Source: Rebecca billardiae RCC1528 | Lineage: Eukaryota; Protista; Haptophyta | Length of the DNA: 64,000 nt | NCBI GenBank assembly: GCA_965240325.2 | Contig: OZ251224.1 | Span: 2,418,001-2,482,000 of the forward strand | Direction of reading: 5' to 3' | Shown: piece by piece, positions 20,069 to 64,000 of the stretch | Numbering within the stretch: the stretch's first letter is position 1 | How the letters are laid out: each line of letters begins with the position of its first letter | Position numbers and translations under genes: made by a program | The notes under the pieces: generated by a model | The model's input: only the letters and a program-made list of their open reading frames with translations | Told to the model about the DNA's origin: nothing | The model's database searches: none

Positions 20069-20949
20069 GTGCGTCGATTCATTCCTCGGCACGATGGAGG
20101 CCGAGCTGGTTGTCCCGACCGGTCCAGACCTCAGGATTATCCTAGATCTGCAGTAAGGTCTGGCGTTTGCCACTGGCGACTGCACACGGCAACAGGGGCG
20201 TTTGCGCCCTGTTGTCGTGTGCACACTGGGGCGCAAAAGGGGTCACCCTCAGGGGGTTTCGCACTGCTGTTGCCGTGTGCACCGGCCCGCTGTGGCCGTG
20301 CACACGGCAACAGGGCGCAAACGGCCCTGTTGCCGTGTGCAGGCGTGCATGGCTTGCGATGGCAGCCAGCCGTCAGCAGGGCGCCACGCCCACTGTTCGT
20401 TGGTAGGCTGGCCCGATGGCGTCGCGGAGCTCACGCGTACGGGGGAGGAGGGCATCGACGAGGAGACGACCAAGGGCGAGAAGCAGCAGGGGGCACGCAG
20501 CACGGGGCTCGGAGCATGCCGCGAGCACGCGTGCCTCCACACCGTCGCACATCAACCTTGCTCGTAGCTGTGCGCTGTGCTGCCACTCATCTCACCATCG
20601 CCCATGCTACGGGCGCGGCCGGGTGGTGGGCATCTACCTGTCGGCGCAGCACTGGCACCGGTGGTCGCCAGACACTCCTCGACTTGCTCTGCGCGTCACA
20701 GCAAGGAGACGGCAGCGGCACAGCTGTGTGAGCTCGCAGATGAAGTGCTCCTCTGCTTTGCGAGGCTGAGAGGCTGAGCACGCGTGGCGAGCGCTGGCAT
20801 TCCCCCGCATTCATGAGACCAACAGGTACATAGCCGTGCCCAGGAGCGCAGGACCAACCGCCGGGTGCTGCTTCAAACACCTGCGCCCCACTCTGCCGGC
20901 AGGCTGAGGGGCGCTCTACTCTATGCTGCACGCGGCAGCAGCAGCTGGG

Positions 20950-22100
20950 CCGTTGGGATGGTCCTGCACGGATGACGGCGGTCGCCGCGGCTGACAGCTT
21001 GGTGTCACTGGTTCGAAGGGCCTGGACGACGGACGCGCCGAGCGTGGTGACGCTGCTCGATGCGCCCACGGCACTGCCAAGCGCGCTGGAGCCGCTGCCT
21101 CGAGCACTACTGTGCCCGCGCCCAGCTTGGGCAGCAGCAGCTGCGCTCAACTCCGCGCCGCGTGCCGTGGCAGCAGCAGGGATGGTGCCACGGCGGCCGG
21201 CGGCGGTCGACGGAGCTGTCGGCTCGGCGGTGCACGCCCGAGGGGCCTGGGCGGTGGGCGCACCGAACGCGGTGCCGCTGCTCGCCTCGCCCATGGCGCT
21301 GGAGCCGCTGCCATCCGACGCTGCTGCGCCCGCGCCAAGCTTGGGCAGCAGCGGCTGCGCTCGACTCCGCGCCGCGTGGGGCGGCAGCACCAGGGATGGT
21401 GCTACGGCGGGCGACGACGGTCGCTAGAGCTGAAAGCTCGGCGGTGTGCGCCTGAGGGGCCTGGGCGGTGGGCGCACCGAACGCGGTGCCGCTGCTCGCC
21501 TCGCCCATGGCGCTGGAGCCGCTGCCATCCGACGCTGCTGCGCCCGCGCCAAGCTTGGGCAGCAGCGGCTGCGCTCGACTCCGCGCAGAGTGCGGCGGCA
21601 GCAGCAGGGATGGTGCCACGGCGGGCGGCGGCGGTCGACGGAGCTGTCGGCTCGGCGGTGCACGCCCGAGGGGCCTGGGCGCTGGACGCACCGAACGCGG
21701 TGCCGCTGCTCGCCTCGCCCATGGCGCTGGAGCCGCTGCCATCCGACGCTGCTGCACCCGCGCCAAGCTTGCGCAGCAGCGGCTGCGCTCGACTCCGCGC
21801 CGCGTGGGGCGGCAGCAGCAGGGATGGTGCTACGGTGGGCGACGACGCTAGAGCTGAAAGCTCGGCGGTGTGCGCCTGAGGGGCCTGGGCGGTGGGTGCA
21901 TTGAGCGCGCTGACGCCTCTCGCCTCGCCCGGCGCGCTCGAGCCGCTGCCATCCGATGCTGCCGCGCCCGCGCCCTGTCGCGCCGAGTGCGGCTGCAGCA
22001 TCAGGGATGGCGCCACGGCGGGCGGGCGGCGGTGCATGCAGCTAGCAGCTCGGTGCTGCACGCGCGAGGGGCCTGGGCGGCAGACGCGCGCAATGCAGTG
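20950..22100 (+). repeat. ~213-bp tandem repeat, about 5 copies
   Basis: CT(G/C)GAGCCGCTGCC anchor at 21086, 21299, 21513, 21727 and 21937. Confidence 0.92.
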
Positions 22101-22939
22101 ACGCTGATGCACGCGTCAGGCGCGCTGGCCAGCCCCCGGAGCTGTTGCTACGACACTTCTTCTGTCCTGCTGCGAGCCGAGCCGCCAGCAGGTTCCGGGG
22201 CGGGCAATGCCGGTCAGCTCATATTCATAAGGCCGGCGGCGCATACCAGTCGTAGCCCGGCAGGTAGGCGATGCAGAAGTTATCAGCAGCATCATGCATC
22301 GTCATCACTACATCAGCATCTGCCTAGACGAGTACGACGTAAGAACTCTTTAAATTATCCACGCGTACTACGGCACCGAGCATATATCTCGAATCATCGT
22401 CAATCTGCTCCGACTAGCCGTTCAGAGCGGTACTCCGACTACGACGATGCATCAGCCAGCTCCGGGGCGGCGGCTGTCCGACACTCTGCCGTCATGTGCG
22501 TATATATATATCTGAAGTGACTCTTACTCCACCTAGCGGTCTATCCGGATCGGTACCCTGGCGGCGGTGTTGTCGTCTGTCCGCCGTCACAGCCTGACTG
22601 CTCGCGTAGCTAGTCACTTATCAGTGATGTGATGGTCTCGTCGTCCGCGTCCGGCCGGACTGTCGCGACGACAAGTCGTGCTGGGCCTGGCGGCTCACAG
22701 TGTAAGTTAGTAGAAGCTAACTCATCAATGTACGAGCATCAGTAGTGAGCAGCAGCAGTAGCAGCTCGACTGCTGGCGTCATCACCGTGCTACACTCCGG
22801 CGCGACACGGTCACGGTCAGCTGGTCAGCAGTCTATACTTATACGCCGGGACCGTAGTACTGTAGTAGAGTACGTATGATACAGTAGTTTTAACGACGAC
22901 CGGTCGGCGCGCGTGCCAAGCAGCACTCAGCACCGCCCG

Positions 22940-24910
22940 ACCACCGCCGCCGGCTTGGCCGTGGCACCTCCCTGCTGCTACCACCGCATGCGGCGCGAAG
23001 CCTCCGGAGCGCAGCTGCTGCCAGGCCTGCCAGCTGCAGCCGTGCAGCGGCGCCGGGGCACGGGCGCAGCGGCATCGGATGGCAGAGGCTCGAGCGCGCT
23101 ACGGAACGAGGCGAGCGGCTACACCGCGCTCGGTGCGTCCAGCGCCCACGCCTCTCGGGTGGGCACTGCCAAGCTTTCAGCTGCTGCGGCCGCCCGCCGT
23201 GGCACCATCCCTGCTGCTGCTGCCGCACGCGGCGCGGAGTGGAGCGCTGCTGCTGCTGCCCTGGCCGGGCGCGGGCGCAGCAGCACTGGATGGCAGCGGC
23301 TCCAGCGCTATGGGCGAGGCGAGCAGCGGCACCGCGCTCGGTGCGTCCAGCGCCCAGGCCCCTCGGGCGTGCACCGCCGAGCTGCCGGCTGCAGCAACCA
23401 CCGCCGCCCGCCGTGCCACCATCCCTGCTGCTGCTGCCGCACGCGGTGCGGAGTCGAGCGCAGCCGCTGCTGCCCAAGCTGGGCGCGGGCGCAGCAGCGT
23501 CGGATGGCAGCGGCTCGAGCGCCATGGGCGAGGCGAGCAGCGGCACCGCGTTCGGTGCGCCCAGCGCCCAGGCCCCTCGGGCGTGCGCTGCCGAGCTTCC
23601 AGCTGCGTCGACCGCCGCCGCCCGCCGTGGCACCATCCCTGCTGCTGCCGCCGCACGCGGCGCGGAGTCAGGCGCGGCTGCTGCTGCCCAAGCTGGGCGC
23701 TGGTGCAGCAGCATCGGATGGCAGCGGCTCCAGCGCGCTGCGGGAGGCGAGCAGCGGCACCGCGTTCGGTGCGCCCACCGCCCAGGCCCCTCGGGCGTGC
23801 ACCGCCGAGCTTTCAGCTCCAGCGACCCACGCCGCCCGCCGTGGCACCATCCCTGCTGCTGCCGCCGCACTCGGCGCGGAGTCGAGCGCAGCCGCTGCTG
23901 CCCAAGCTTGGCGCGGGCGCAGCAGCGTCGGATGGCAGCGGCTCGAGCGCCATGGGCGAGGCGAGCAGCGGCACCGCGTTCGGTGCGCCCACCGCCCAGG
24001 CCCCTCGGGCGCACACAGCCGAGCTTTCAGCTCCAGCGACCGCCGCCGCCCACCGTGGCACCATCCCTGCTGCTGCTGCCGCACGCGGCGCGGAGTCGAG
24101 CGCAGCCGCTGCTGCCCAAGCTTGGCGCGTGCGCAGCAGCGTCGGATGGCAGCGGCTCGAGCGCCATGGGCGAGGCGAGCAGCGGCACCGCGCTCGGTGC
24201 GCCCACCGCCCAGGCCCCTCGGGCGCACACAGCCGAGTTTTCAGCTCCAGCAACCGCCGCCGCCCACCGTGGCACCATCCCTGCTGCTGCTGCCGCACGC
24301 GGCGCGGAGTCTAGCGCAGCCGCTGCTGCCCAAGCTGGGCGCGGGCGCAGCAGCGTCGGATGGCAGCGGCTCCAGCGCGCTGCGGGAGGCGAGCAGTGAC
24401 ACCGCGCTCGGTGCATCCAATGCCCGGGCCCCTCGGGCGCGCACCGCCGAGCTGACAGCTGCGCCGACCCACGCCGCCCGCCGTGGCACCATCCCTGCTG
24501 CTGCAGCCAATGCGGCGCGGAGTCAAGTGCAGCTGCAGCTGGGCCCCAGCTGGGCGCGGGCACAGCAGCACCAGATGGCAGCGGCTCCAGCGCGCTGGGC
24601 AGTGCCGTGGTCGTGTGGAGCAACGTCACGGCGCTCGGCGCGTCCATCGACGAGGCCCCTCGAGCGAGCGACACCGAGCTGTCATCTGCGGCGAAAGCCG
24701 TCATCCGCCGCGGGACCATTCCAGCAGCTGCTGCCGCATGCAGTGCAGACTCGAGCGTGGCTGCCGCTGGTGTTGGCGGCCCGGATGGGCGCGGGTGCAG
24801 CATCATCAGGTGCCAGCGACCCCATCGCGGCGGGCGCGATGGGCCAGGTCGCTGCGTTTGGCGCGCCATTGCCCAGGCCGTTCAAGCGAGCACCACCGAG
24901 CTGTTAGTTG
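22940..24910 (-). repeat. Same ~213-bp tandem repeat, inverted, about 9 copies
   Basis: GTGGCACCATCCCTGCTGCTG recurs about every 213-214 bp and is the reverse complement of the left array. Confidence 0.92.
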
Positions 24911-26471
24911 GAGCAACTGCTGCCGCCCGTCATTATACTGTACGTACTGCTGCTGCAGCATCAACAGCGCCGCTGTTACCAGCAGCGCTGCGCTCGTGTA
25001 TCCGAAGCAGCGCCGCATTGATGGTCCTGCGGTCTGAGTAGGGGAGTATGCCAGTAGCTCGCATGCACCTGGAGTGCAGTCCATGCCTGTACTGCCTCGC
25101 CGAGTACTACTAGAGTAGTAGGACCTCATGTGCTCACGCAGCTGTGCCGCTGCCGTCTCCTTGCTGTGACGCGCAGAGCAAGTCGAGGAGTGTCTGGCGA
25201 CCACCGGTGCCAGTGCTGCGCCGACAGGTAGATGCCCACCACCGGGCCGCGCCCGTAGCATGGACGATGGTGAGATGAGTGGCAGCACAGCGCACAGCTA
25301 CGAGCAAGGTTGATGTGCGACGGTATGGAGGCACGCGTGCTCGCTGCATGCTCCGAGCCCCGTGCTGCGTGCCCCCTGCTGCTTCTCGCCCTTGGTCGTC
25401 TCCTCGTCGATGCCCTCCTCCCCCGTACGCGTGAGCTCCGCGACGCCATCGGGCCAGCCTACCAACGAACAGTGGGCGTGGCGCCCTGCTGACGGCTGGC
25501 TGCCATCGCAAGCCATGCACGCCTGCACACGGCAACAGGGCCGTTTGCGCCCTGTTGCCGTGTGCACGGCCACAGCGGGCCGGTGCACACGGCAACAGCA
25601 GTGCGAAACCCCCTGAGGGTGACCCCTTTTGCGCCCCAGTGTGCACACGACAACAGGGCGCAAACGCCCCTGTTGCCGTGTGCAGTCGCCAGTGGCAAAC
25701 GCCAAACCTGGCTGAGATCTGCACGCCAGTGGGCGGCCCACTGGCGTGCAGATTTCGGGTTTCGTCAGGTTGGCGCGCGCTGGGGCGGACGCTCCCGCCG
25801 CCACCTCGCTCTCGCCTTCCGCCGCCAGGGCGAGGCCGCGCGAAGTCCAGTAGATCTTCCGATGGGACGCAGCGGGGCGGTAGCGAAGCGGTGAACTACT
25901 GTCGCTTGCGCGTGGCGCAGCGCTTCGCGCCCTCGCACCTCGACGGTCAGCTGCAGGCCCGCGAGAGCGCGAGCGTGCGCCGCCGCCACATTCAGCCAGA
26001 GCCATGCCGCGCCTTGCCTGCCGAGGCAGCGAAGAGGCACGCACGTGAAGCCGCTGGGCACCATGGCGCGCGCCCACGGCCGTACTGTCACATGGCTCAC
26101 GCCATCCTTGGATGCGCGCCTCGGGTTGCGCTCAGCGCGCGCATACTTTGCGGGGACGACAGCACGGCTGAAGCCGAGAGGCGGCGCACACGCCCGTGCG
26201 GGCTCAAGGCGCCGAGCAGATGGTCAGACGCGAGTTGCCCGGCGCAGGGCGGCGCAGAAAGGCCCTTTGCCTCTGCCCGACCGCGTGCGCCATCGCCGCG
26301 TGCACGTCTACGACCGCGGCGGCGCGGCAGCGGGCGGCGCCTCGCGGCGGATGGCTGTGGCGGGCGCACGCGGCGGGTTTTGAATTTCTCTCATTTTCCG
26401 AGTTTCCCAAATCCTGAGGTCTGGACCGGTTGGAAGATTCCGCCAATCCGTGCGCAGGTTGGGGGAGCGCG

Positions 26472-28426: not shown

Positions 28427-28501
28427 GCCCGTGTAGCTCAGTTAGGTCAGAGCGTTCGACCAATAATCGAAAGGTCACCAGTTCGAGCCTGGTCATGGGT
28501 A
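28427..28501 (+). tRNA. tRNA-Ile (anticodon AAT)
   Basis: Cloverleaf: GCCCGTG/CATGGGT acceptor stem, GCTC/GAGC D-stem, TTCGA-CCAATAA-TCGAA anticodon arm, ACCAG-TTCGAGC-CTGGT T-arm, followed by CCA and a TTTT Pol III terminator. Confidence 0.9.
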
Positions 28502-28792
28502 CCATTTTGTCCCCGTTCTTCACACCGGATGCGTCGCTTTTTGTCCTCTTGTTTTCGCGCTGGCGGTCTTGGCCTTGGCTTCAGTTGCTCGGGCACGTTG
28601 CATGCGCCAGCCCGCCAGGCGAGTGAGACGGCTACCGTGACCGTGCATCTGGCATCAGCGCGAACGGCGTCGTCTGCGATACGAAGTCACTGAGCGTCAT
28701 TCGGATCCGGGATCGGGCCCGCCGACACGGGTCCGGTCTGCGGCGACGACGGACGAGTGTCGAGTGTGGGCCCGTCCGGCGACGCGCGTCCG

Positions 28793-29812: not shown

Positions 29813-30766
29813 ATGGCGGCGACGAGCACCATCACCCTCGGCGCCGTGCTCGTCGCCGCCGCCCTCCTCCTGCTCGGGTGCGCGGCGTGTCGGCCGCGCC
29901 GGCGCCCGCGCGGCGGGGCCGGCGTGGCTGCGCCGGACACCTTCGTCGGCTCGCTCGTGCACGCGCTCAACGCGCCCTCGACCACGCAGTGGCTCAACCT
30001 CGGGCTGTGGCCGCGCGGCGCTCGCGGCGGCGCGTCAGCGTACGCGGCCGCGGCCGAGGCGCTGGCCGCGCGCGTGGGCGAGGCCGCGAGCGTGCGTCGC
30101 GGGTGCGCGGTGCTCGACGTGGGCTGCGGCTTCGGCGAGAGCCTCGTGCTCTGGCTCTCGCCGCGCTTCCGCGCCGCGCGCGCCGTCGGCGTCAACGCGT
30201 CTGCCGCCGAGGTTGCGGGCGCGCGCGCGCGCGTGCGCGCGGCAGAGGCGTCCGACGGCGCCGTCGTGGTGTGCGCGGACGCGGCGGCGCTGCCCGAGGC
30301 GCTCTGCGCCGGCGACTTCCACGCCGTCGTCTCCGTCGACGCGGCGTACCACTTCCGCCCGCGCGACGCGTTCCTACGCGGCGCGTGGCGCGCGCTCGCG
30401 CCAGGCGGCTCGTTCGCCGCGGCCGACGTGGTCGGCGGCGGCGGCGGCGGCGCGCGCGCGCAGGCGTCGTGGCGGCGGCGTGCGTTCTGCGTGCTCGCGG
30501 GGATCCCGCTCGTCAACCTCGCGCCCGACGCCGCCGCGTACGAGGCGCGGCTGCGCGGCCTCGGCTTCGAGGCGGTCGCGGCCGAGGACGTGACCGAGGC
30601 CGTTCTCGGCGGCTTTGGCGCGTGGGCGGCCGCGCACGAGGCGTGGGCGGTGCGGCTCGCGGGGCGCTTCATCCGCGCGATGCGCGCCCACGCGGACGTG
30701 CGTTTCGTCGTCGTGCGCGGCACCAAGCCCAGGCCGTCGGGGCCGTCACTACCCGATGGCGATTGA
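29813..30766 (+). CDS. Class I SAM-dependent methyltransferase with N-terminal membrane anchor
   Basis: WLNLGLW, VLDVGCGFGES (motif I), FHAVVSVDAAYHF and LAPGG. Confidence 0.9.
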   Translation: MAATSTITLGAVLVAAALLLLGCAACRPRRRPRGGAGVAAPDTFVGSLVHALNAPSTTQWLNLGLWPRGARGGASAYAAAAEALAARVGEAASVRRGCAVLDVGCGFGESLVLWLSPRFRAARAVGVNASAAEVAGARARVRAAEASDGAVVVCADAAALPEALCAGDFHAVVSVDAAYHFRPRDAFLRGAWRALAPGGSFAAADVVGGGGGGARAQASWRRRAFCVLAGIPLVNLAPDAAAYEARLRGLGFEAVAAEDVTEAVLGGFGAWAAAHEAWAVRLAGRFIRAMRAHADVRFVVVRGTKPRPSGPSLPDGD

Positions 30767-31107
30767 CAATGACGGCGAGCAGCGCTTGGCAGAGTCATCG
30801 TCATAGCAGCAGCGCGCGCAACGGTAGCTACGTACGGGTAAGTTCTCAGAGGTGATGCCATCATGATCGATCACTCATCACCGGGTGACGCCATGATGGT
30901 CGATATCTAATTCTGTAAGGCCGTATCAGTGTCTGCTGTGCGAGTTAGTCGTCGTATAGTAGTCATCGCATCGCCATCACACACACTCATGTCAGTCACA
31001 CGTTCTCGGACTTCGTCGCGGAGTCATCTGCATCGTCGCGTCGGCACCGCGGGCACACGTGACACGGTCCGGTCGTCTCGGATGTGACGAGGCTATAGCT
31101 TAGCTAC

Positions 31108-32556
31108 TCACTGATGGCCGCAGCCGTGCTGCTTCCACCAGTCGTCACCGCACTGGATGCAGGCCTGCGCGAACTTGAATAGCGATGCTGACGATGACGA
31201 TGCGCCGCCGCCACTCAGCATGCTCTTGGCTTTCCGCACGAGCGCAGACAAGTAGCACTGGTAATGGATGCGGTTGGCGTCGGCGGCGGAAATGATTCTA
31301 TCGGTAGCGCCAACCGAGGATGCGCCCTTGCATTTCGCCCCATTGCAGCGCCGCATGTGGGCCAGCTTGTTCAACGCGTAGGCAGGCAGGCTCAAGACAC
31401 GCCCAGATTGGCGGCTCTGGAAGTATTCGAGCGTGCACAGGAGCCCGGCGAATTCGCACAGCCCCTCCTCCATCGGCACGCCCCTCCCCTGCGGCGCATC
31501 CAGGCGCACGAGTTTCTGCGCCTGGTGCACGTGGACGTGCATCAGCTCGTGCGCAAGAGTCCATACCGCCTCGCACTCGTCGTCAAATATTCGCCTGTCG
31601 AGCGCGATCTCTGCCACTGGCGCCCTGCCAAAGATGGAAGCACGAGAGCCTGCTGCCGTGAATTTCACAAACGCTCGCGCGTGGCTCGGTGGCTCATCTG
31701 CGTCCAAGACACGCGAGGACGCCGCCTTGCACACCTCCGGCATCTGCGTGTGCTCCTTCATTCGGATCCATGCGAGCACCTCGGCAGCTGTGAAGAACAA
31801 GCAGCCGCCATCGCCCAGCATGTTCTTCTCGTACCACGACGCGACCCAGTCAACGACGACTGGGACATAGCCCTTGCTCGCGCAGAGCGCCACTTGCTCG
31901 CAAGCGTGGTCAGCTTGTTCAATAGAATGCACAGCCGATGCGATCCATGAAGCAGGGCGACCAGGCACGGAACGCGCCGTACGCTGACGCTTCCCGTCAT
32001 CGCGTCCGGAGGCTCGCGAGATCGAGTCCCTCTGGATGGTGTACCACATGTGACCGTTGGCGTCACCCGACCCGATTATGGTCACCACGCGCTGAGTCGT
32101 GCACGAGCGGTGCCCCTGCATGAATGACAAGTGGATCAAATGCCGCTCAGCGCCAGCCAGGCCGACAATCTTCTCCTCGACGCGCAACGTCTCGGGCTCG
32201 ACCCAGTCGGCGCCAGCGTGCTCACTCCAGTAACCGGCGCAGCCTGCCTTTCCGTGGTAGTCCTCCTGAGACCCATCCATGTCGACGGAAAGATGAGAAC
32301 TATCGTTGAAGAAGACCTCCTCAAGCGTCATCCAATCACCGACTGATGCCGCCGCGAAAAACTGCTTCATGAAGCGTTCTGCAACCTCGTCGTGACTCGG
32401 GAACTCGCGCGTCAGATCGGGCGCACGCGCGCGCGTCTCTGCGGCTCGAGCTCGAATGGCGCGTCGCTGCTCCGCATCAGACGCGCTATCGCTCGCATTC
32501 CAGGCCGTGTTGGACGCGTGAGACACTCCCGATGACGCGACAGACAGCGTGTTCAT
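31108..32556 (-). CDS. SnoaL/NTF2-like domain fused to DA1-like HExxH zinc peptidase
   Basis: 482-aa ATG ORF. TLAHELMHVHV...MEEGLCEF matches the DA1 peptidase pattern HEMMH..EEGICQ. AERFMKQFFAAASVGDW..YHGKAGCAGYW resembles SnoaL-like domains. Confidence 0.7.
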   Translation of the reverse strand: MNTLSVASSGVSHASNTAWNASDSASDAEQRRAIRARAAETRARAPDLTREFPSHDEVAERFMKQFFAAASVGDWMTLEEVFFNDSSHLSVDMDGSQEDYHGKAGCAGYWSEHAGADWVEPETLRVEEKIVGLAGAERHLIHLSFMQGHRSCTTQRVVTIIGSGDANGHMWYTIQRDSISRASGRDDGKRQRTARSVPGRPASWIASAVHSIEQADHACEQVALCASKGYVPVVVDWVASWYEKNMLGDGGCLFFTAAEVLAWIRMKEHTQMPEVCKAASSRVLDADEPPSHARAFVKFTAAGSRASIFGRAPVAEIALDRRIFDDECEAVWTLAHELMHVHVHQAQKLVRLDAPQGRGVPMEEGLCEFAGLLCTLEYFQSRQSGRVLSLPAYALNKLAHMRRCNGAKCKGASSVGATDRIISAADANRIHYQCYLSALVRKAKSMLSGGGASSSSASLFKFAQACIQCGDDWWKQHGCGHQ

Positions 32557-32759
32557 GATGAGGTGCTGTTCGGGAGTGAGTGCAGCGGAGCAGGGTGGTT
32601 GGAGAGCTCTCCGCCCTTGGCCAAGGGAGGCTCTCCACTCACTTCGGACGCTTTGGATCCGCTGCAGCCGCCGCCGCCGCGCCGCGGCACCCGGGCCGGA
32701 TAGTTGAGGCTCTGAGGTCTATGATACGCTCGTCATCTATGAAGCGGCCGGGATGATAC

Positions 32760-33560
32760 CGGTTGGCGCACGGGGCGGCGCTCCCCGGATTAATAGTGCC
32801 GCCGCCGCCGCCGCCTCCCCCCGTCCGGTCGCTCGCGCCGACCGCCGCCTGGGCGAGGCCGCGCGATGTCCACTAGAGCTTCCGATGGGACGCAGCGGGG
32901 CGGTAGCGAGGCGGTGAACTACTGTACCTTGCGCGTGGCGCAGCGCTTTGCGCCCTCGCACCTCGATGGTCAGCTACAACCCCCCCGTGAGCCGCTACAT
33001 CGTTCCGAGCCAGAGACATGGGCGCCTTGCCTGCCGAGGCAGCGGAGAGGCACGCACGCGCGTGAAGCCGCTGGGCACCGTGGCGCGCGTCTACAACCGT
33101 ACTGTCACATGGCTCACGCCTTCCTGAGATGCGCGCCTCGGGTTGCGGCTCAGCGCACGCATACTTCATATCGGCACTCGTCAGCGACTGGGCACGGCTG
33201 ACGACTATAGTGACTGTTAAGACACGCACCCGTGGTCGACAGCGGACTGCTGAAGCGAGAGGCGGCGCTCACGTCCGTGCGGACTCAAGGCGCGGAGAAG
33301 AAAGTCAGACGCGAGTCGCACAGTGCAGGGCGGCGCAGAAAGGCTCTATGCCTCTGCCAGACCGCGTGCGCCGCATCGACGCCGCGTGCCTCGGTTGCGC
33401 GGGGCCTTGCGGCCACAGCCACGGTGCCAGGCGTATCCGCGTAATTCAGGCACTCGTCATAAGTGCCGTCAATCACTGACTATATATGCGACCGCGCGGC
33501 CGCGCGGCAGCGGGCGGCGCCTCGCGGCGGATCAGGCTGAGTGGCGGCGCACGCGGCGGC
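32760..33560 (+). repeat. Second, diverged copy of the element F body (dispersed repeat)
   Basis: Shares cttccgatgggacgcagcggggcggtagcga..gcggtgaactactgt and ccgtactgtcacatggctcacgcc with 25768-26380 but lacks the 21-bp TIR. Confidence 0.85.
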
Positions 33561-33707
33561 CCGCTTTATTCACAATTCACACGATCTACTAACGACTTAT
33601 GATGATTCAGACAGATGATGCTGCCGACATGATTGTCCTCTGGCAAGGCTCCGACACTCCTCATCGCTCGTCATCCTCGTCATGCACGAGAGCCGCGAGG
33701 CGTCGCA

Positions 33708-36700
33708 TCACTGCGCCGCCGCCGCCGCCGCCGCCGCCGCGGGGAAGGCGGCGAGCAGGCAGGCGATGCGGCAGTCAGCGCGGTGCGCGTCGCGCTCGCC
33801 GCCGCACGCAAAGCACGCGCCCGCCGCCGCCGCCGAGCCGTCGAGCGCGCGCAGCGCGTCGTAGGCTGACGCGGCCCACTGCGCCATGGAGGACGGCGCG
33901 TGGCCCGGCGCCGCCGCGAGCGGCCGCGCCGCGGGCTTCGCCGGCATCGGCATCGGCGGCACGGCGTGCGACGCGCTCGCGGGCGGCGCGGCCGGCGGCG
34001 GCGGCGCGGCCGGCGGCGGCGAAGCCCAGCCGGGCGGCGGCGGCGGCGCGTGCTGCTGCGCGGCAGCGCGGTGCGCGCCAGACGGCCTGGGACACCAGCC
34101 CGCGTGCAGGCTCGCGAGCAGCTCGCGGTGGTGCGCGACGCCGAACGCGGCGCCGAGCGCGGACGTGCGCCGCGCGCCGGGCGCCGCGCGCGCCGTCCCC
34201 TCCAGCCGCGCCCACGGCGCAGAGTCGGCGTCGAGCGCGGCGCGCAGCGCGGCGCGCGCCGCGCCGAACGCTTGCAGCACCGCGCTCACCTTGTAGCATA
34301 CGCGCGCGGCGTTGGCGTTGACGGAGCCCGCGCGTAGCTGCGGCGGGTTGAGCACCACCATCGGGTCGTGCTCGCACCCGGCGCACGAGTCCGCGAGCGC
34401 CTCGCGCCGCGGCCACTCGACCGCGCCAGTGGCCGGCTCGACGCGCGGCGGCGCCGAGAGACACACGACGTGCGCACTCGGCTCGAGCGCGCAGATTGCG
34501 TCGAGCGCGAGGAGCAGCAGCTCGGCCAGTCCGGGCGTGGGCGGCGGCAGTCCGGCGGGCGTTGGTGTGTGCGCGGCGTGCGCGCCGCCGCCCTGACCGC
34601 CAGCCCCTGGCGCGGCGCCGGCGGCTGGCGGAAGGCCGCCGGCGCCGCCGTCGGCGCGCGCTCCCTCCGCGCCGCCAGGCACGCGCGCGGCGGCGGCGGC
34701 GGCGGCGCCGCCGCCGCCGAGCGCGACGCCGCGCGCGACTCCGCGCAGCACGGTGGCGAGCAGCAGCGTGAGCGCGTGCGAGGAGAGCCCGCCGTCCGGC
34801 GCGCCGAGCAGCGCGCGGCACGCCAGCAGCTGCTTCGCGACGAGCGTGAGCGCGCGCAGCGGCGGCAGCTCCGACTGCAGAGCCAGGGCCACGCGCGTCG
34901 CCGCGGCGCCGCGGTGCGCGCAGCCGTGCGCGAACGAGACGTCAGCGGCCAGTGGGACGGAGGACGGCGGCTGGCGGGGCTGCGCGGCGGCGGCGGCGGC
35001 GGAGGCGTGCGCGCCCAGGCCCCCGAGCGGCGCCGCGTCCGCCTCCGCGCGCGCCTCGAGCTTGAGCAGCGGCACGGGCGAGCGCTCCACGGGCACGCAC
35101 ACACTCACCCACGGGGCAGCCGCGAGCGCGCGCGCGAGCTCGGCGACACACATGGCGGGAGGCGGCAGCGCGGAGCCGCGCAGCTCGAGCGCGATGTCCA
35201 CGTCGGACTGCGGCAGCGCGAGGCCCGAGGCGACCGAGCCGAAGACGAAGACGGACACGCGCCCGCCCGGCCACGAGCGCTCCGCCGCCGCGGCGACGCG
35301 GTCCACAATGGCCGCCTGCCACGCGTGCCGGCGCGCGCAAAGCACACTCAGCTCCGTGGCAAAGTCTGAAACGTCGGCGGAGAGCGCGTGAAGGGCGGGG
35401 CGGGCGGCGTGCGGCGGGATGGCGGGCGAGGGCGAGGGCGGGCGGAACGGCGGCGGCGAGGGCGCGGCGGGCGGGCGCGAGGGCGTCGGCGGCGTCGGCG
35501 GCGCCGCCGCCGCGGCGGGCGCCGTCGCGCGCAGCGGCTCAGCCGGCTCGGGCGGCGGCGGCGGCGGACGCGACGGCGCGGGCTCGGCGGCAGGAGTGGA
35601 AGCCGCGCGCTGCCGCCGCAGCGCGAGCGGCGGCGAGGCGGCGTCGGCAGCCGCGGGCGGCTCGGCTGAGCGCGCGCCCTCCGCGCCCGCCGCCACGCTC
35701 GGCGGCGCGGCCGCGGCGGCCGCGGCCTCGGCCGGCGGCGGCTCGGCGCCGTCGGCGGCTGGCGCCGCCGCCGCCGCCGCTCGGTTGCGCCGCGCCGCGC
35801 GCCGCGCGCCGCGCGCCGCGCGCCGCCGGCTTGGCGCTGCCGGCGGCGGCGGCGCCGGTGCCGCCACCGCCGCCGCCGCCGCCGCCACGGGCGCCGGCGC
35901 CTCGGTCGCGTCCGCGCCCAGCCACTCGAGCGTCGCCGAGGCGAGCAGCTGCGAGCAGCCGTCAAGCACCGCGGCCCAAAGCGCTTGCCGGCCGAGCGCC
36001 GCGCCGCCCGCGCCGCCGCCCTCAGGCGCGTCTGAAGCGCCGCCGCGCCGCGCGCCGCGCCGCGCGCCCTCCGCCTGCAGCTGCGCCCACGGCACCAGGG
36101 GCCCGGCCTCCAGCAGCGCATCGACGCGGGGCCCAGCCTCCAGCAGCGCGTCGGCGCGCAGGGCCGCGCAGCCCTCCGCCTGCGCCTTCGCCTGCAGCTG
36201 CGCCCACGGCACCGGCGGGAGCCCTGATGCCTCAAGCAATGCGTCTGCGCGCAGCGGCGCGCAGCCTTCCGCCAGCGACGAGGGCGGAGCGGGCGGCGGG
36301 CGCGGCGGCGGCGCGGCGGCGGCGCGCCGGGCGAGCGCGCCGGCGCGCGGCCGCGCGTTCCGCGCCCGCGCGCCGCGCCGCGCGCCCGCCGCCTCGCCCG
36401 CCGCCTCGCCCGCCGCCGGCGCCGCCGCCGCGCCGCCGACGCCGCCGAGCGCACGCGCCGCGCGGCTCACCAGCCAGTCTCGCTCGGCGGCGCCGAGGTC
36501 GCTCCACGCGCGGAGGACGCGGACGACGGGCTCGGCGCCGGGTGGCGCGACGGGCGTCGCGCGCGCGCCGAGCCACGCCGCGTGCGCGCCGTGCAGCCGC
36601 GACGCGAGCGCGCGGCCGAGCAGCGCGCCTGGGGTGACGACGGCGGCGCGCGGCGGCGGCGCGCGCCCGGCAGCCGCGCGCTTGCGCAGCGCGTGCGGCG

Positions 36701-42182: not shown

Positions 42183-42329
<147 letters not shown>

Positions 42330-47887: not shown

Positions 47888-49253
47888 TCAGTGTGAAGAC
47901 GATGATGCCGCCTCAGCGCTGCGCTTCCCCTCGGTGCAGTGCGGCTTGTGCACCACCACGCGCGCTGCAGGTGCTCGCGGCTGCAGAAGACCGCCACGTG
48001 GCAGCGCTCACACTTCCTCACGCCACGGCCCGACTGTGCGCACACCATGCAGCACGTGGAGGCCACCTCGCGATCTGCGGCGTAGCCGCTGAGCCAAAAC
48101 ATCGGATCCAGGGAGGCGCTGTCAAGCTCGTGCCCGCGGCGCAGCAGCCGCACGCCCTCGCCTACGTTGCGCTCCACGCCCGCGCCTGCCAGCACCAGCC
48201 GCGCCAATCCGACGTGTGCACGTGGGAGCCCGCCGTCGACTGCTAGCCTGAACAAGCGCGCCGCCTCAGCCCAGTCCTGCGGGACGCCCTCGCCCCTCTC
48301 GCACCACACGCCCAGGTTGAACTGCGCATCTGCGTTGCCCTGCTCGGCCGCCAGCCGATACCAGCGCGCCGCCTCGGCCATGTCCTGCGGCACGCCCCCG
48401 CCCTTCTCGCAGCACACGCCCAGGTTGAACTGCGCAACTGCGTTGCCCTGCTCGGCCGCCAGCCGATACCAGCGCACCGCCTCGGCCATGTCCTGCGGCA
48501 CGCCCTCGCCCTTGGCGCAGCACACGCCCAGGTTGCACTGCGCAAGTGCGTCGCACTGCTCGGCGGCCAGCCGGTACCAGCGCGCCCCCTCGGCCATATC
48601 TTGCGGCACGCCCTCGCCCTTCTCGCAGAACACACCCAGGTTGTACTGCGCCCGTGCGTTGCCCTGCTCGGCCGCCAGCCGGTACCAGCGCGCCGCCTCG
48701 GACGTATCTTGCGGCACGCCCTCGCCCGTCACGCAGCACTTGCCCAGGTTGCACTGCGCATTTACGTTGCCCTGCTCGGCCGCCAGCCGGTACCAGCGCG
48801 CCGCCTCGGCCCAATCCTGCGGCACACCCTCGCCCTTAAAGCAGCACACGCCCAGGTCGAACTGCGCATCTACGTTGCCCTGCTCGGCCGCCAGCCGGTA
48901 CCAGCGCGCCGCCTCGGTCATGTCCTGCGGCACGACTGTGCCCAAACTGAAGCACCTGCCCAGCGCGTACTGCGCTGGTGCAAACCCCTGCTCGGCCGCC
49001 AGCCGGTACCAGCGCACACCTTCTTCGAGATCCTGCTCGTGCCCGTGCCTTCCCTGGGCGTGGAGATTGCCCAGCCAATGCTGAGCGTCCGCGAGCCCAC
49101 GATCCGCGGCGATGCGGCAGAGGCGAGCCGCCTCGCGCACGTCGCGCGCGACGCCGTCGCCCACTTCGGTGCGCTTCGCCAGCATGAACGTCGCACGCGC
49201 GTCGCCCCGCCCCGACCGGCGTCGGAGCAGCCTCACCGCCGCGTCGCCCCCAT
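47888..49253 (-). pseudogene. Sel1-repeat (about 10)/zf-MYND paralogue with two frameshifts
   Basis: ATGGGGGCGAC versus ATGGAGGGC(G/A)AC in paralogues (-1, giving MGATRR*). TGGTGGTGCAC versus TGGCGGGTGCAC near 47955 (-1) removes the HKPHC ligands. An internal in-frame ATG at 49185 could give a truncated product. Confidence 0.8.
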
Positions 49254-49412
49254 CGCGTCGGACACCCCTCGAAAAGCCTCGGAGCAAGCTCGGAGGGTGA
49301 CGAGAGTCGGAGACCGTTGGTCGTTTGTGAAGCGGCAGCAGCAGCTCTTGATCGGTGGAGCTCGGCAGCTCGCGGGTGCGCAACGGTGAGTTGCGCGCGC
49401 TCGCGCACAGGT

Positions 49413-54951: not shown

Positions 54952-56637
54952 ATGGAGGGCGACGCGGCGGTGAGGCTGCTCCGACGCCGGTCGGGGCGGG
55001 GCGACGCGCGTGCGACGTTCATGCTGGCGAAGCGCACCGAAGAGGGCGACGGCGTCGCGCGCGATCTGCGCGAGGCGGCTCGCCTCTGCCGCATCGCCGC
55101 GGATCGTGGGCTTGCGGACGCTCAGCATTGGCTGGGCGATCTCCACGCCCAGGGAAGGCACGGGCACGAGCAGGATCTCGAAGAAGGTGTGCGCTGGTAC
55201 CGGCTGGCGGCCGAGCAGGGGTTTGCACCAGCGCAGTTCAAGCTGGGCGTGTGCTGCCGTGATGGCGCGGGCATGCCGCAGGATATGGCCGAGGCGGTAC
55301 GCTGGTACCAGCTGGCGGCCGAGCAGGGCCTTGCAGCCGCGCAGTTCAACCTGGGCTGGTGCTGCGAGAAGGGCGATGGCGTGCCCCAGGATATGGCAGA
55401 GGCGGTGCGCTGGTACCGGCTGGCGGCCGAGCAGGGCCTTGCAGCCGCGCAGTTCAACCTGGGCTGGTGCTGCGAGAAGGGCGATGGCGTGCCCCAGGAT
55501 ATGGCAGAGGCGGTGCGCTGGTACCGGCCGGCTGCCGAGCAGGGGCACGCAGTTGCGCAGTGCAACCTGGGCTGGTGCTGCGAGAATGGCGAGGGCGTGC
55601 CGCAGGATATGGCCGAGGCGGCGCGCTGGTACCGGCTGGCGGCCGAGCAGGGCCTTGCAGCCGCGCAGTGCAACCTGGGCTGGTGCTGCGAGAAGGGCGA
55701 GGGCGTGGCGCAGGACATGGCCGAGGCGGTGCGCTGGTACCGGCTGGCGGCCGAGCAGGGGCACGCAGTTGCGCAGTGCAACCTGGGCACGTGCTGCGCG
55801 GAGGGCAAGGGCGTGCCGCAGGATATGGCCGAGGCGGCGCGCTGGTACCGGCTGGCGGCCGAGCAGGGCTATGCACGGGCGCAGTACAACCTGGGCTGGT
55901 GCTGCTCGATGGGCGAGGGTGTGCCGCAGGATGTGGCCGAGGCGGCGCGCTGGTACCGGCTGGCGGCCGAGCAGGGCTACGCACGGGCGCAGTGCAACCT
56001 GGGCACGTGCTGCGCGAAGGGCGAGGGCGTGCCGCAGGACATGGCCGAGGCGGCGCGCTGGTGCCAGCTGGCGGCCGAGCAGGGCTACGCAGCCGCGCAG
56101 TACAGCCTGGGCTGGTGCTGCGAGAAGGGCGAGGGCGTGGCGCAGGACATGGCCGAGGCGGTGCGCTGGTACCGGCTGGCGGCCGAGCAGGGCCACGTAC
56201 TAGCGCAGCTCAGCATGGGCTCTTGCTGCCATAACGGCGATGGCGTGCCGCAGGATATGGCTGAGGCTGCGCGCTGGTACCGACTGGCAGTCGATGGCGG
56301 GCTCCCAAAGGCACACTTGGCGTTGGCGTATCTGCTGCTGCCGGGAGAGGGTGTGGAGCGCAACGTGGGCGAGGGCGTGCGGCTGCTGCGCCGCGGGTAC
56401 GAGCTTGACAGCGCCTCGGTGGATCCGAGCGAGGCGCTCAGCGACTTTGCAGGAGATCGCGAGGTGGCCTCCACTTGCTGCATGGTGTGCGCACAGTCGG
56501 GCCGTGGCGTGAGGAAGTGCGAGCGGTGCCACGTGGCGGTTTTCTGCTGTCGAGAGCACCTGCAGCGCGCGTGGCGGGTGCACAAGCCGCACTGCACCGA
56601 GTGGAAGCGCAATGCTGCAGAGTCGTCGTCACATTGA
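54952..56637 (+). CDS. Sel1-like repeat protein (about 12-13 repeats) with C-terminal zf-MYND, 561 aa
   Basis: Same architecture and near-identical termini as 43154-45598; intronless. Confidence 0.95.
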   Translation: MEGDAAVRLLRRRSGRGDARATFMLAKRTEEGDGVARDLREAARLCRIAADRGLADAQHWLGDLHAQGRHGHEQDLEEGVRWYRLAAEQGFAPAQFKLGVCCRDGAGMPQDMAEAVRWYQLAAEQGLAAAQFNLGWCCEKGDGVPQDMAEAVRWYRLAAEQGLAAAQFNLGWCCEKGDGVPQDMAEAVRWYRPAAEQGHAVAQCNLGWCCENGEGVPQDMAEAARWYRLAAEQGLAAAQCNLGWCCEKGEGVAQDMAEAVRWYRLAAEQGHAVAQCNLGTCCAEGKGVPQDMAEAARWYRLAAEQGYARAQYNLGWCCSMGEGVPQDVAEAARWYRLAAEQGYARAQCNLGTCCAKGEGVPQDMAEAARWCQLAAEQGYAAAQYSLGWCCEKGEGVAQDMAEAVRWYRLAAEQGHVLAQLSMGSCCHNGDGVPQDMAEAARWYRLAVDGGLPKAHLALAYLLLPGEGVERNVGEGVRLLRRGYELDSASVDPSEALSDFAGDREVASTCCMVCAQSGRGVRKCERCHVAVFCCREHLQRAWRVHKPHCTEWKRNAAESSSH

Positions 56638-59191: not shown

Positions 59192-59344
59192 CGTGGCCCG
59201 CTCCGTGCGCACGCTCCGGCGAGAGGCCTACTGCCTACTTGCGTCCGCCGAGCAGCGCCACCATCAGTGGCAGTGGATGCACCGATGCAGGCGCCTGCGA
59301 CTTTCGCGAGTACCACTGAGCACAGTGGTGCTAATCTGCCCTGA

Positions 59345-61842
59345 GGGCACCGTGCCCTCTGGAGGGCACCGTGCCCTCGTGGGGCTCTGAGGGCACGGTG
59401 CCCTCGCGGGACGCAGCCTCGCACTGCGCGGCGCGCCGCGATGAGTTCGAGTGGTGGACGGGGGTGCATCGGATGCTAGTGACGGTGCGATGGGCCGCGA
59501 TGAGCCCGCCATCACCCAGTGATCTCGTGCGGTGCCAGCTCGCCCTCCTCCTCGTCGTCACTCGCACTGGCACCACGTTGCGCGCGCGCGCGCATGGCTT
59601 GCCTTGCGCGCGCTGTGTTCACGCGCAGTCTGCTTGGCAGCAGGGCGACCGTGGCTGGTGGTTGCGGTCGCGGATGATTGGAGTGTGTGCAGCTGCGCTA
59701 CATCCGCACGCGACCCGCCCGTCCTCGTCGAGCGCTGGAGAGACACGCGTGTCGCGCATGCACTCGAGTGGAAGCAGGAGAGCGGCACGCGAGCTTGGCT
59801 GCGCGCGCACGACAAGGTGCGCCAACACACAGCTCCTCCCGCCATGAGCACCAGCTACGCACGCACCCCTGCCGCGCTGCCTGACCTGCGAGGCCGCCGC
59901 GGTGCGGACACTGCGTGAGACACCCACGGTCAGCGGCCACGGCTGACACTGGTCAACAGCTCATGCAGCCGTTGCTGCAGCTTCGATTGCAACAGCAGCA
60001 GCGCTGGTGGCAGTCAACCCCATCACTGTCGCTGGCGTAACTACCCTCGGCGCCATAGCACCCACGGCACCAGCAGCCCTTGCACGTCCAGCAGCTGCGG
60101 CACGTCGCTCGGCTGAGCGGCGGCAACACGGACTGAGGCTGTCGTCTGAGCAGCCGCGCGGGCAGCTCCATGACCTTGGGGCGCACTGTCGCTGCATGCT
60201 GCTCCAAGCGGCTGCTGTAGCTGCTGCGGCTGAGACAGCAACTGCTATTGCTCGCGATGGCAGCTTCACCGCAGCTGTACCATCAGCATCATCAGTTAGA
60301 ACGCGATGTGGCAATAAATGGGATTTCCGCCGTTTTTTTCGCTCGATGGATTTCGAATTATAAATGAAAATCCCGCTGACAGAGACTTCAGAGACTTGGT
60401 GTGTGCACACACTTAACGTGGCGGCTGTGCTGCAGGGCTCACACGGTACGTGAAGCGTCGGCGCATGGAGCCTGGGGAGCTCTTATCCGCAGGGGTGTGG
60501 TAGGCGTGCCCCACCCCGCACGCAGCGCAGCGCTGTAGCAGCCGCTTCCGCGTACTCGCACTTTGGCGGTGGTGCCAAGGCCGCGCGCCGCTCGCCTGAC
60601 GGCATCGCCGCAGCAGCGCGGTCCCACGCGCATGCGGACGGGCGCGGCAATGGCGGTGGGGTTCGCAACGTGCAAGGCGTCAGCGGCTCGGCACCGGGTC
60701 CACCCGGCTGCAGCAGTAGCGCTGTCGGTGCTCGCGGCGCATGCGGCGTCAGGCGCTCACCAAGCGGCGTGTCGGGCGGGTGCGGATGCAGCTGCCGGAA
60801 CCAGGGCGCCGGGTATGCACGCGGCTGCAGCTCGCCCCAGCGCGCACTCGCAGGCAGTGAAGTCGGCCGCCCTGCCGGCCGGATTCGTAGGCGCTCGCTT
60901 GGCGGCTGCCGGCGCGCGACAAGCCAGAGCACGAGTAAAGCATCCGCGCCGCCACGGCGGTGGTGACAGAGAGCACGACCACGGGCGGTGGTGCCGCCGA
61001 TGCAGCGAGCGCGAGCTCGAGCGCGGCAGTGAACGTTGCAAGCAGCGTCAGCGGTGCGCGGAGCGATCAAGCCCGCCGTTCCAAGAGGAACAAGGGCGGC
61101 ATTGCGGGAGGGTAGGGGCACCGGCAGACAGCAGCGATGTCGCGCCATCGCTGATCGGACTGACGTGGCTAGCCGGTCGATGTGGCCATTGCTCGCGAGA
61201 GTATGCTATGAGCCAGATTGCTGTGCAGCACGCGACCGTGTCAGCCGTGGCCGCTGACCGTGGGTGTCTCACGCAGTGTCCGCACCGCGGCGGCCTCGCA
61301 GGTCAGGCAGCGCGGCAGGGGTGCGTGCGTAGCTGGTGCTCATGGCGGGAGGAGCTGTGTGTTGGCGCACCTTGTCGTGCGCGCGCAGCCAAGCTCGCGT
61401 GCCGCTCTCCTGCTTCCACTCGAGTGCATGCGCGACACGCGTGTCTCTCCAGCGCTCGACGAGGACGGGCGGGTCGCGTGCGGATGTAGCGTAGCTGCAC
61501 ACACTCCAATCATCCGCGACCGCAACCACCAGCCACGGTCGCCCTGCTGCCAAGCAGACTGCGCGTGAACACAGCGCGCGCAAGGCAAGCCATGCGCGCG
61601 CGCGCGCGACGTGGTGCCAGTGCGAGTGACGACGAGGAGGAGGGCGAGCTGGCACCGCACGAGATCACTGGGTGATGGTGGGCTCGTCGCGGCCCATCGT
61701 ACCGTCACTAGCACCCGATGCACCCCCGTCCACCACTCGAACTCATCGCGGCGCGCCGCGCAGTGCGAGGCTGCGTCCCGCGAGGGCACCGTGCCCTCAG
61801 AGCCCCACGAGGGCACGGTGCCCTCCAGAGGGCACGGTGCCC
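59345..61842. mobile_element. Element B: non-autonomous foldback element, ~605-bp TIRs, 3-bp TGA TSD, GGGC termini (PIF/Harbinger-like signature)
   Basis: TGA|GGGCACCGTGCCCTCTGG ... CCAGAGGGCACGGTGCCC|TGA; near-identical arms about 59345-59949 and 61238-61842. Confidence 0.9.
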
Positions 61843-61850
61843 TGAAGAGT

Positions 61851-64000
61851 CACTACAAAAAGTCTCCGCCAGCGGAGCATCCGGGCAAGGGGCCCAGACC
61901 CTCCGCCGGCGGAGATTTTTGTGGCCACGAAAAATCCCCGCTGGCGGAGCATGGAATGCTCCGCTGGCGGAGCCTGGGCTTGCAGGAATGACACAACAAA
62001 CGTACTAGTTATGGTATCAGAAGTCTGTCAACCACCGAACAGCAGTCACCTCCGCTGGCGGAGCTCGCTAATGAGCCATGCCTTTTGTAAACTAATACAC
62101 TCGGCACTTGAACTGAGCTCCGCTGGCGGAGCTTCGGGGGCGCCGAATGCCATTCTTGATGACCCACCTGACTTGAACTGAGCTCCGCTGGCGGAGCGTC
62201 GGTGGTCAGCGCCGTGTGTCATATCGGAGAAATAATGCTAAGCCTTTCAACGCATTCATACTCTGCTGTGCCACACATTCAACCTCCGCTGGCGGAGCTC
62301 ACTGGCCTATTCGACTTGAACTGAGCTCCACTGGTGGAGCCTCGGCTGCGCCGAATGTCCTTAATCGATGACCCACTCTCGACTTGAGCTGAGCTCCCCT
62401 GGCGGAGCTTTGGTGGCGCCGCATGTCATATTGGAGTAACGCGGAAGCGTCAACCGTAGTCATATCTATATTGAGACTCAACCTCCGCTGGCGGAGCTCG
62501 CGGACCTACTAGTATTCAACTTTAACTGAGCTCCGCTGGCGGAGCCTCGGCTGTGTCGAATGTCCTTATCGATGGCCGACGTCTTGACTTGAGCTGAGCT
62601 CCGCTGGCGGAGCTTTGGTGGCGCCGCATGCCATTTATGGGAATAATGTGAAGCCGTTAACCATAATCATATCCATATTGACACTCAACCTCCGCTGGCG
62701 GAGCTCACGGACCTATTCGACTTGAGCTGAGCTCCACTGGCGGAGCTTTGGTGGCGCCGCATATCATATTGGAGTAATGCGAAGCCGTCAACCGTAATCA
62801 TACGTATCCATATTGATACTCAACCTCCGCTGGCGGAGCTCACTGGCCTATTCGACTTGAACTGAGCTCCGCTGGCGGAGCCTCGGCTCCGCCGAATGTC
62901 CTTATCGATGGCCCACGACTTGACTTGAGCTGAGCTCCGCTGGCGGAGCTTTGGTGGCGCCGCATGTCATATTGGAGTAATGCAAAGCCATTAACTACCG
63001 TAATCATATCCATATTGACACTCAACCTCCGCTGGCGGAGCTCGCGGGCCTATTCAACTTGAACTGAGCTCCGCTGGCGGAGCCTCGGCTGCGCCGAATG
63101 TCCTTATCGATGGCCCACGACTTGACTTGAGCTGAGCTCCGCTGGCGGAGCTTTGGTGGCGCCGAATGTCATATTGGAGTAATGCGAAGTCGTTAACCGT
63201 AATACTATCCATATTGACACTCAACCTCCGCTGGCGGAGCTCACGGGCCTATTCAACTTGAACTGAGCTCCGCTGGCGGAGCCTCTGCTTGTGGTTTGCT
63301 GCAATTGGGGCTGGGCAGCCTGGGCTCAGCATGGGGCAGCTGTTCACAGCCCAGGCGGGGCGTCACCGCCTGTGAGCCGTCGGTGGGCAGGGCCGACGGC
63401 GTCGCAGAGCTCATGCGTGGGAGCAGCGCGTCGAGGAAGCGATCAAGGTCGAGAAGGAAGGGGCAAGCAGCAGGGGCTGCCTGTACGTTTGTACATGCCT
63501 CCACACCGGTGCACATCACCCTTGCTCACTGCAGTCGTGAACAGTGCTGCCACTCATCTCATCATCGCTCACCATGCAGTGACGGCCGAGCTGCGGCGAA
63601 CTCTCACAGGCACCGAACACGCATCGGCTGTGCCCGCTGGTGCTGGCATGCGCTGTCCTCTACTTGCTGTCGGACAGCAAGGAGACGGCACAGCCGCATC
63701 TGCGAGCGGGCGAGGTGATGCTGTCCAGTGTCCTCTGCTCAGCGAGGCTGAGAGGCTGAGCACGGATCACGGATAGTGAGCCCTGGTATCTCAACGCATC
63801 CAGGAGAGCAGTTGGTGCATGCCTGTGCTCAGACGTGCAGGACCAACCATCCGGTGCTGATTCAAGCACCCGCGCCAACAGCGGCGGCACTCAACTCCAC
63901 GCTGCTGATGCGGCCGCACAGCTGCAGGGATGGTACCACGGCGGGCGACGGCGGGCGCTGCAGCTGGCAGCTCGGTGGTGCCTGCCCGAGGGGCCTGGGC
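61851..64000. mobile_element. Element D: left end of a CACTA (En/Spm)-type element with long subterminal repeat array (partial)
   Basis: Begins CACTACAAAAAG, followed by about 23 copies of palindromic CTCCGCTGGCGGAG, then sequence homologous to the arm and 213-bp unit of element C. The other end is outside the window. Confidence 0.75.
61864..63283. repeat. Higher-order tandem array (~200-bp unit, three CTCCGCTGGCGGAG palindromes per unit)
   Basis: Motif spacing cycles about 42/68/90 bp, e.g. 62825, 62867, 62935, 63027, 63069, 63137, 63226, 63268. Confidence 0.93.

Follow-up and report, generated by a model that had tools for sequence, protein, structure and literature searches.

Two transposons of a haptophyte contig share an inner segment and a satellite behind unrelated ends

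How do two transposons come to hold the same interior when their ends appear to have nothing in common? This question was raised by a 64,000-bp stretch of DNA from the haptophyte Rebecca billardiae RCC1528 (contig OZ251224.1, positions 2,418,001 to 2,482,000; hereafter the window, i.e. the whole stretch that was analyzed), in which an element with CAG ends, C, and an element with a CACTA-type end, D, had been predicted to share an internal body and a unit of 213 bp. D is cut by the end of this 64-kb window (position 64000). Our comparison confirms that C and D carry the same inner segment and the same satellite behind unrelated terminal modules. The explanation that we favor, with a probability of roughly 0.5, is a chimeric non-autonomous element in which the inner arm of a foldback from the C family acquired a CACTA-type end module. 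The parts on which the comparison depends are:

20151–25714, plus strand: element C, a transposon of foldback type, 5,564 bp long and non-coding, whose ends are CAG...CTG
20151–20375, plus strand: left terminal module specific to C, comprising the terminus and five CACACGGCAACAGGG motifs that give long hairpins (mirror copy at 25490–25714)
20376–21025, plus strand: shared body and first degenerate satellite unit in the left arm of C, homologous to D 63355–63998
61851–63287, plus strand: terminal module specific to D, comprising the CACTACAAAAA terminus, a nested hairpin and 23 CTCCGCTGGCGGAG sites (fold z −7.2)
63288–63354, plus strand: 67-bp junction from the D array to the shared body, with no remnant of a C-type end (score 8 vs. 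a shuffle mean of 8.6)
63355–63875, plus strand: shared body in D, homologous to the C body
63876–64000, plus strand: start of the first 214-bp unit of D, cut by the window end and an outgroup to the C units

The predicted homology of the two bodies was borne out. BLAST paired 63378–63568 with 20398–20601 (74.5% identity, E 5e-14) and 63727–63876 with 20744–20887 (75.7%, E 6e-13), and the last bases of the window, 63876–64000, matched every 214-bp unit of C at 76–84% (best E 6e-23). A Smith-Waterman alignment of C 20343–20900 with D 63288–63876 scored 157, as compared with 13.6 ± 1.6 (maximum 22) for 300 dinucleotide shuffles and a maximum of 22 for 264 real segments of the window. The full colinear alignment (C 20376–21025 with D 63355–63998) extended over 684 columns at 67.7% identity, gaps counted, with BLAST blocks of 74.5–76.5% within it. 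This alignment crossed the junction between body and satellite with the phase preserved, which argues that body and array were inherited together rather than captured separately, and its modest identity (68–76%) points to old homology rather than recent copying. The first unit of D was 80–82% identical to the units of C, which were 84–89% identical among themselves and did not sort by arm; the D array is a sister lineage of the C units and not a recent copy of them. Thus the unit is shared as predicted, with a period of 214 bp (Tandem Repeats Finder) in place of 213 bp.

The four strings quoted in the original prediction were among the five longest identical runs of the alignment (18, 17, 23 and 12 nt). 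Five runs of 12–23 identical bases lie between 20532–20859 and 63496–63848, within a body that is otherwise ∼68% identical. Functional constraint on the body was considered as a source of these runs and set aside, their clumping being marginal by permutation (P ∼0.03).

No such likeness was found at the ends. The first 225 bp of C aligned no better than shuffled sequence with either the 1,437-bp module of D or its 67-bp junction (either strand), and no C-type motif was present in 61851–64000. A complete nested element of the C type is therefore excluded on the visible side, and a C-type end hidden at the D junction was also rejected, as the junction scored at shuffle level. The switch from end module to body fell at most 33 bp (C) and at most 67 bp (D) from the last terminal motif, which in both elements is where the domain of hairpin motifs ends on its inner side, and all four terminal modules nearby gave strong single-strand DNA hairpins (z −4 to −7) that no shuffle equaled. 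At the level of nucleotide alignment, then, C and D are demonstrably homologous inside and unrelated at their ends.

Element C begins with CAGTAAGG and finishes with CCTGGCTG (CAG at 20151, CTG at 25714). Its inverted arms (20151–∼22079 and ∼23056–25714) hold the 214-bp arrays, with a unique center between them, as is typical of foldback transposons, and an exact duplication abuts the inverted-repeat ends:

20144–20150, unstranded: left copy of the target-site duplication, AGATCTG, read directly
21083–21974, plus strand: left 214-bp tandem array, 4.2 copies by Tandem Repeats Finder
22080–23055, unstranded: unique middle domain, less GC-rich and without a partner in the arms
23056–24600, minus strand: right 214-bp tandem array, 7.2 copies, inverted relative to the left array
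24758–25131, minus strand: inner body counterpart in the right arm, ∼61% identical to left-arm 20734–20911 and more diverged than D
25715–25721, unstranded: right copy of the target-site duplication, AGATCTG, identical to the left copy

The inverted ends and the duplication show that C has transposed. The CAG ends, the 7-bp duplication and the ∼200 bp of terminal palindromes were all as originally described, the palindromes being five CACACGGCAACAGGG sites in ∼190 bp at each end (0.24 expected by chance); elsewhere in the window one weak site with two mismatches was the only other occurrence. The two terminal modules folded as DNA with z of −4.1 and −4.4. Stop codons interrupt all six frames of the left arm end (20151–20960), and protein-database searches with the open reading frames (ORFs) of C gave no relatives. 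The length of the duplication matches the P superfamily (7–8 bp, with 7 bp given for Galileo; PMC3573991), and on this basis the C module may belong to that superfamily (Galileo-like), or possibly to hAT or Mutator.

The arms of C differ in age along their length. Over exactly the outer 590 bp (20144–20733 and 25720–25132) they are 98.5–100% identical. Inside this break (20733/25132), the left arm (20726–21027) is 60.6–61.0% identical to the right arm vs. 72.6% and 69.5% to D, with C left 20744–21025 matching D 63727–63998 locally at 76.5%, and the two arms re-align only from 20912 and 24757 inward. The break argues that one arm recently received its terminal block, i.e. the end module plus ∼365 bp of body, from the other by copying or conversion. 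C is a recombinant or converted mosaic, with a recent terminal block over an older, heterogeneous interior, and its alignments demonstrate block-wise arm copying. Terminal blocks in the C family are thus copied or exchanged as units, and copying from arm to arm is the step that could turn the one-sided acquisition of an end into a two-ended mobile element.

The same observations bear on an assembly artefact, in which palindromes would be false or sequences wrongly joined close to the end of the window. Misassembly is known to result from long inverted repeats, and short-read contigs of this organism break at repeats (a Logan contig ends inside one). However, the arms of C differ in array copies (4.2 vs. 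7.2) and in inner sequence, exact duplications surround both C and a neighboring element, X1 (see below), and each element has a unique middle domain; an artefact is therefore barely credible.

For D, the predicted CACTA-type terminus and 1.4 kb of palindromes were recovered. The terminus CACTACAAAAA is present at 61851 and nowhere else in the window (0.05 sites expected), and 23 CTCCGCTGGCGGAG-type sites lie between 61864 and 63281 (43 strand-matches vs. 3.06 expected), forming within 1.44 kb the subterminal array of a short repeated motif that is seen in CACTA elements. A 109-nt nested hairpin (61864–61972) occupies most of the first 122 nt; at its center, two copies of the terminus meet, one inverted and slightly degenerate (ATTTTTGTGG) and one direct (CCACGAAAAAT). 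A CTCCGC..GCGGAG site stands beside each of these two copies. From 62106 inward the module is a tandem array with a unit of ∼203 bp, which is broken off mid-unit at 63287. The module thus looks like a CACTA/En-Spm end, and the bases before it could be one half of a duplication:

61848–61850, unstranded: AGT, the 3 bp preceding the CACTA terminus, a candidate duplication whose partner position lies outside the window

If D is a CACTA element, its right end would be the inverted CACTA end, TTTTTGTAGTG, with a repeated AGT and would fall beyond 64000; of the 5'-CACTA...TAGTG-3' pair, the window holds the left end, CACTACAAAAA, alone. A complete small CACTA element (61851/61925–63297) was tried as well and rejected, since past the last motif there is a mere TTGTGG resemblance and no matching duplication.

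The break at 63287 could also mark an insertion. A C-like segment from a third element, with ends of another type starting near 63288, may have entered the subterminal array of D, in keeping with the mid-unit interruption and with the unique 67 bp that follow (63288–63354), which hold a small 9-bp inverted repeat. Yet neither a recognizable terminus nor a duplication was seen at 63288, the one boundary that falls inside the window, and the C-type terminus, like the C-type motif, is found nowhere in 61851–64000. We regard nested insertion as quite unlikely.

A parallel to C and D is provided by a second pair of related elements in the window:

17447–20068, plus strand: X1, a 2,622-bp long-inverted-repeat element with 678-bp arms (97.9% identity)
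59344–61843, minus strand: X2, a 2,500-bp relative of X1 with 611-bp arms (98.9% identity)

X1 combines its long inverted repeats with a 9-bp duplication, GTGCGTCGA, at 17438–46 and 20069–77, as found in Mutator-like elements (8–11 bp). Around X2 no target-site duplication of lengths 2 to 10 was present (flanks ...tctgccctg and gaagagtca..., at 59335–59343 and 61844–61852), so the Mutator-like pattern of X1 does not extend to it; this is as expected after ectopic recombination or capture at a break. The bodies of the two are 76.7% identical over 2.4 kb (∼85–90% near the arms), with the center flipped. On both arms, the outer ∼135 bp of X1, including a 52-bp perfect palindrome, are unrelated to the outer ∼65 bp of X2, where three AGGGCACCGTGCCCT palindromes at each end replace the X1 module. 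With all four ends visible, the pair demonstrates the replacement of ends at the inner edge of a hairpin module.

The broader prediction, that end modules are interchangeable, therefore stood in so far as unrelated modules sit on a common body in C and D and likewise in X1 and X2. Its claim that C and D are an independent case of an end swap did not. X1 lies to the left of C, at a gap of 66 bp plus two duplications (∼82 bp), and X2 to the left of D, at a gap of 7 bp, and the window contains no further fragments of X1, X2, C or D. When elements were placed at random without overlap, both pairs came within 82 bp in 9 of 400,000 trials (P ∼2e-5, or about 2 in 100,000). Since X1 abuts C and X2 abuts D, the two cases of end swapping are not independent.

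Such pairing could reflect an ancient duplication of a linked block, X element and body element together, whose end modules were later replaced in place, so that a single history underlies both swaps. In favor of this, each of the two body-bearing elements has an X copy directly beside it, and divergence is broadly alike (76.7% for X1/X2, 68–76% for C/D). Against this, the flanks and spacers of X1-C and X2-D are non-homologous, separate exact duplications bound X1 and C, the X center is inverted between the pairs, and at least five separate ends would have to be replaced. Non-homologous flanks and the flipped center make a simple block duplication unlikely, and with all points considered we find this history decidedly improbable. 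A segmental duplication of the flanks was also rejected, as no homology was found beyond compositional matches.

Because the flanks are non-homologous, the position of X elements beside body elements suggests either that insertion is targeted by some rule or that the pairs have a history in common. The D target lies 4–7 bp from the terminal palindromes of X2, and the C target overlaps a palindrome of the host:

25717–25753, unstranded: perfect 18+1+18 palindrome in host DNA (z −7.0), its left edge overlapped by the target site of C

One candidate explanation is that elements insert where hairpin-forming DNA begins or ends. No second copy of the host palindrome occurs in the window. On a wider reading, the shared interior would be more than passive cargo: a body cassette made up of inner segment and satellite would survive by taking on, time after time, the binding-site arrays of unrelated superfamilies, with new ends copied from arm to arm, and would itself carry a function that targets insertion beside X elements or palindrome edges. 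This would explain the X adjacency, the C target on the 37-bp palindrome and the five identical blocks of 12–23 bases; we nevertheless rate it as improbable.

With these data the main rival can be weighed, namely that nothing chimeric moves at all: 61851–63287 would belong to a separate CACTA-type element, of which it is the left part and which may be broken or solo, lying beside an old C-family fragment that has lost its terminal 225 bp. Such plain juxtaposition fits the mid-unit end of the D tandem array (63287) and the absence of any match for the next 67 bp, as well as the age of the body (∼68–76% identical to C) and a setting in which elements are nested, with X2 only 7 bp away and without a duplication. 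Hairpin arrays are moreover plausible break points, so that a junction at a module edge is weak evidence for capture. On the other hand, juxtaposition requires that C and D both broke no more than a few tens of bp from the module boundary, X1 and X2 show boundary-precise replacement on both arms of complete elements, and the arms of C show terminal blocks copied as units. We feel that juxtaposition is somewhat unlikely, though a serious contender.

A chimeric origin remains our preferred reading, and it would have proceeded as follows. C and D would be non-autonomous foldback-type DNA transposons derived in part from one ancestor, from which both inherited, as one block, a ∼0.5-kb inner-arm segment and the head of the 214-bp array. 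The terminal module of each would consist of a terminus and an array of short hairpin-forming motifs, the latter being putative binding sites, by analogy, for a transposase encoded elsewhere. Most likely, recombination or sequence capture first produced the chimera in one arm, at the inner boundary of its motif array, and the opposite arm would then have gained the new end through conversion between arms or inverted duplication, in which case D presumably has a second, inverted end.

Several observations weigh against this origin. D is seen at one end only, with no second CACTA terminus, confirmed 3-bp duplication or inverted arm in the window, and the mid-unit break of its array at 63287 would also fit a breakpoint or an insertion. 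The adjacency of X to both C and D hints at a history or targeting rule that the chimeric origin leaves unaccounted for. No transposase domain was found in 20 long ORFs of the window, none of which lies inside C; no enzyme is thus linked to any end module, and the superfamily labels used here are therefore taken only from ends and duplication length. Finally, neither DNA scans (metagenome, genome and viral) nor protein searches produced further copies. Exact-pattern scans of metagenome and genome contigs with the paired motif of D and the hairpin of C returned nothing, a scan of the same contigs with the satellite unit gave two matches, neither similar to the window, and viral-contig scans gave nothing or one chance 18-mer. 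A protein word search with an ORF from the C arm and one from the D body had 0 matches, as did an exhaustive phmmer search with the 664-aa ORF of the array.

The surrounding DNA has a G+C content of ∼70% and encodes eukaryotic proteins, including a DHHC palmitoyltransferase (a single relative was found for the DHHC-domain ORF, at 43% identity), Kelch, ShK, an MTPAP-like nucleotidyltransferase, hSac2 and Sel1-repeat/MYND proteins. The 108-bp tandem arrays proved not to be transposons but to encode Sel1 repeats of 36 residues in a small family of paralogous genes, with loci at 43154–45598 (minus strand), 47821–49383 (minus strand) and 54952–56637 (plus strand) and a fragment at 12472–12912; in the copy of 814 aa, 18 Sel1 repeats are followed by a MYND zinc finger at the C terminus. 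Microsatellites include long (TC)n and (TG)n, with a perfect (TC)71 at 42186–42327, and long (AT)n tracts (12128–12172 and 15578–15633) stand within the ∼70% G+C DNA. Two direct repeats of ∼0.55–0.7 kb (25840–26380 and 32855–33570; ∼85% identity, 7 kb apart), which could be LTR-like or a local duplication, enclose ATG-started ORFs of 593 and 482 aa without a Pfam match. An exact look-up of 20 ATG-started ORFs found 31108–32556 alone on record, in a 2.2-kb Logan contig (run ERR14847148) that is 100% identical to window 30724–32903, and the Logan contig breaks within the second direct repeat. ARAGORN called a tRNA-Ile (AAT) at 28427–28504 and a 96-nt tRNA-Ala (GGC) at 36284–36379, both doubtful since an Rfam scan gave nothing at the gathering threshold.

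Should D prove two-ended, it would be a clear case of one passenger and its satellite moved by two unrelated transposition machineries, and the arms of C would show how a new, one-sided end gets copied across. This bears on the birth of non-autonomous elements, the spread of satellites and the mis-joining of families in transposon libraries built by clustering; for annotation, families in this genome are best assigned by the terminal 0.1–1.5 kb and not by internal similarity. As it stands, the locus illustrates well, in a lineage not sampled before, a phenomenon that is already known. The phrase 'modular system' used in the original prediction overstates the novelty, as chimeric and modular foldback elements have been documented (PMC3573991, PMC4079207).

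Among known systems, C is most readily compared with Galileo of Drosophila, a foldback-like member of the P superfamily with 7-bp duplications, long inverted repeats containing ∼210-bp internal tandem repeats, and chimeric copies, of which those with non-matching flanks are regarded as participants in ectopic recombination (PMC3573991). C resembles it in its 7-bp duplication and in the unequal number of tandem repeats between very long arms, as well as in other Galileo features, i.e. mostly non-autonomous copies, chimeras of subfamily segments and extension of arms by inverted duplication. Galileo chimeras, however, join subfamilies of one transposon with the same terminus, whereas the ends of C and D are unrelated and imply different duplication lengths. 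Members of the P superfamily are mobilized by a P-type transposase (THAP plus RNase H-like) that has its sites in the inverted repeats; the placement of C in this superfamily would be by ends and duplication length. Tetris has a flanking domain, ∼220-bp tandem repeats, an inner domain and a non-coding middle domain (PMC4079207), and C is like Tetris/DAIBAM and foldback elements (Drosophila FB, sea-urchin TU) in this domain plan, in a satellite riding on a transposon and in modules shared between elements. Tetris and DAIBAM have common ends and different interiors, whereas C and D have a common interior and different ends; Tetris duplications are 8–10 bp, unlike the 7 bp of C.

The CACTACAAAAA terminus of D matches those of the CACTA/En-Spm elements Psl (CACTACAAAAAA) and En1 (CACTACAAGAAAA), of whose superfamily a 3-bp duplication is typical (PMC3193017). 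D is also like them in having a dense subterminal motif array with foreign DNA behind it, but differs in that only one end is seen and in the unusual length of the domain that holds the motifs (1.44 kb, with 23 sites in a ∼203-bp repeat). Non-autonomous CACTA elements of the Tpn1 and Tgm types capture foreign DNA; what D captured would be a piece of a different transposon and not a gene fragment. X1 resembles Mutator-like elements in its 9-bp duplication, its ∼680-bp inverted arms and its lack of coding capacity, and differs in lacking transposase evidence and in having a sister copy, X2, with other termini and no duplication. The pattern thus falls into a class already known, the modular and chimeric foldback transposons represented by Galileo and Tetris, and what is unusual here is that the ends of C and D apparently come from different superfamilies and that each body is paired with an X element.

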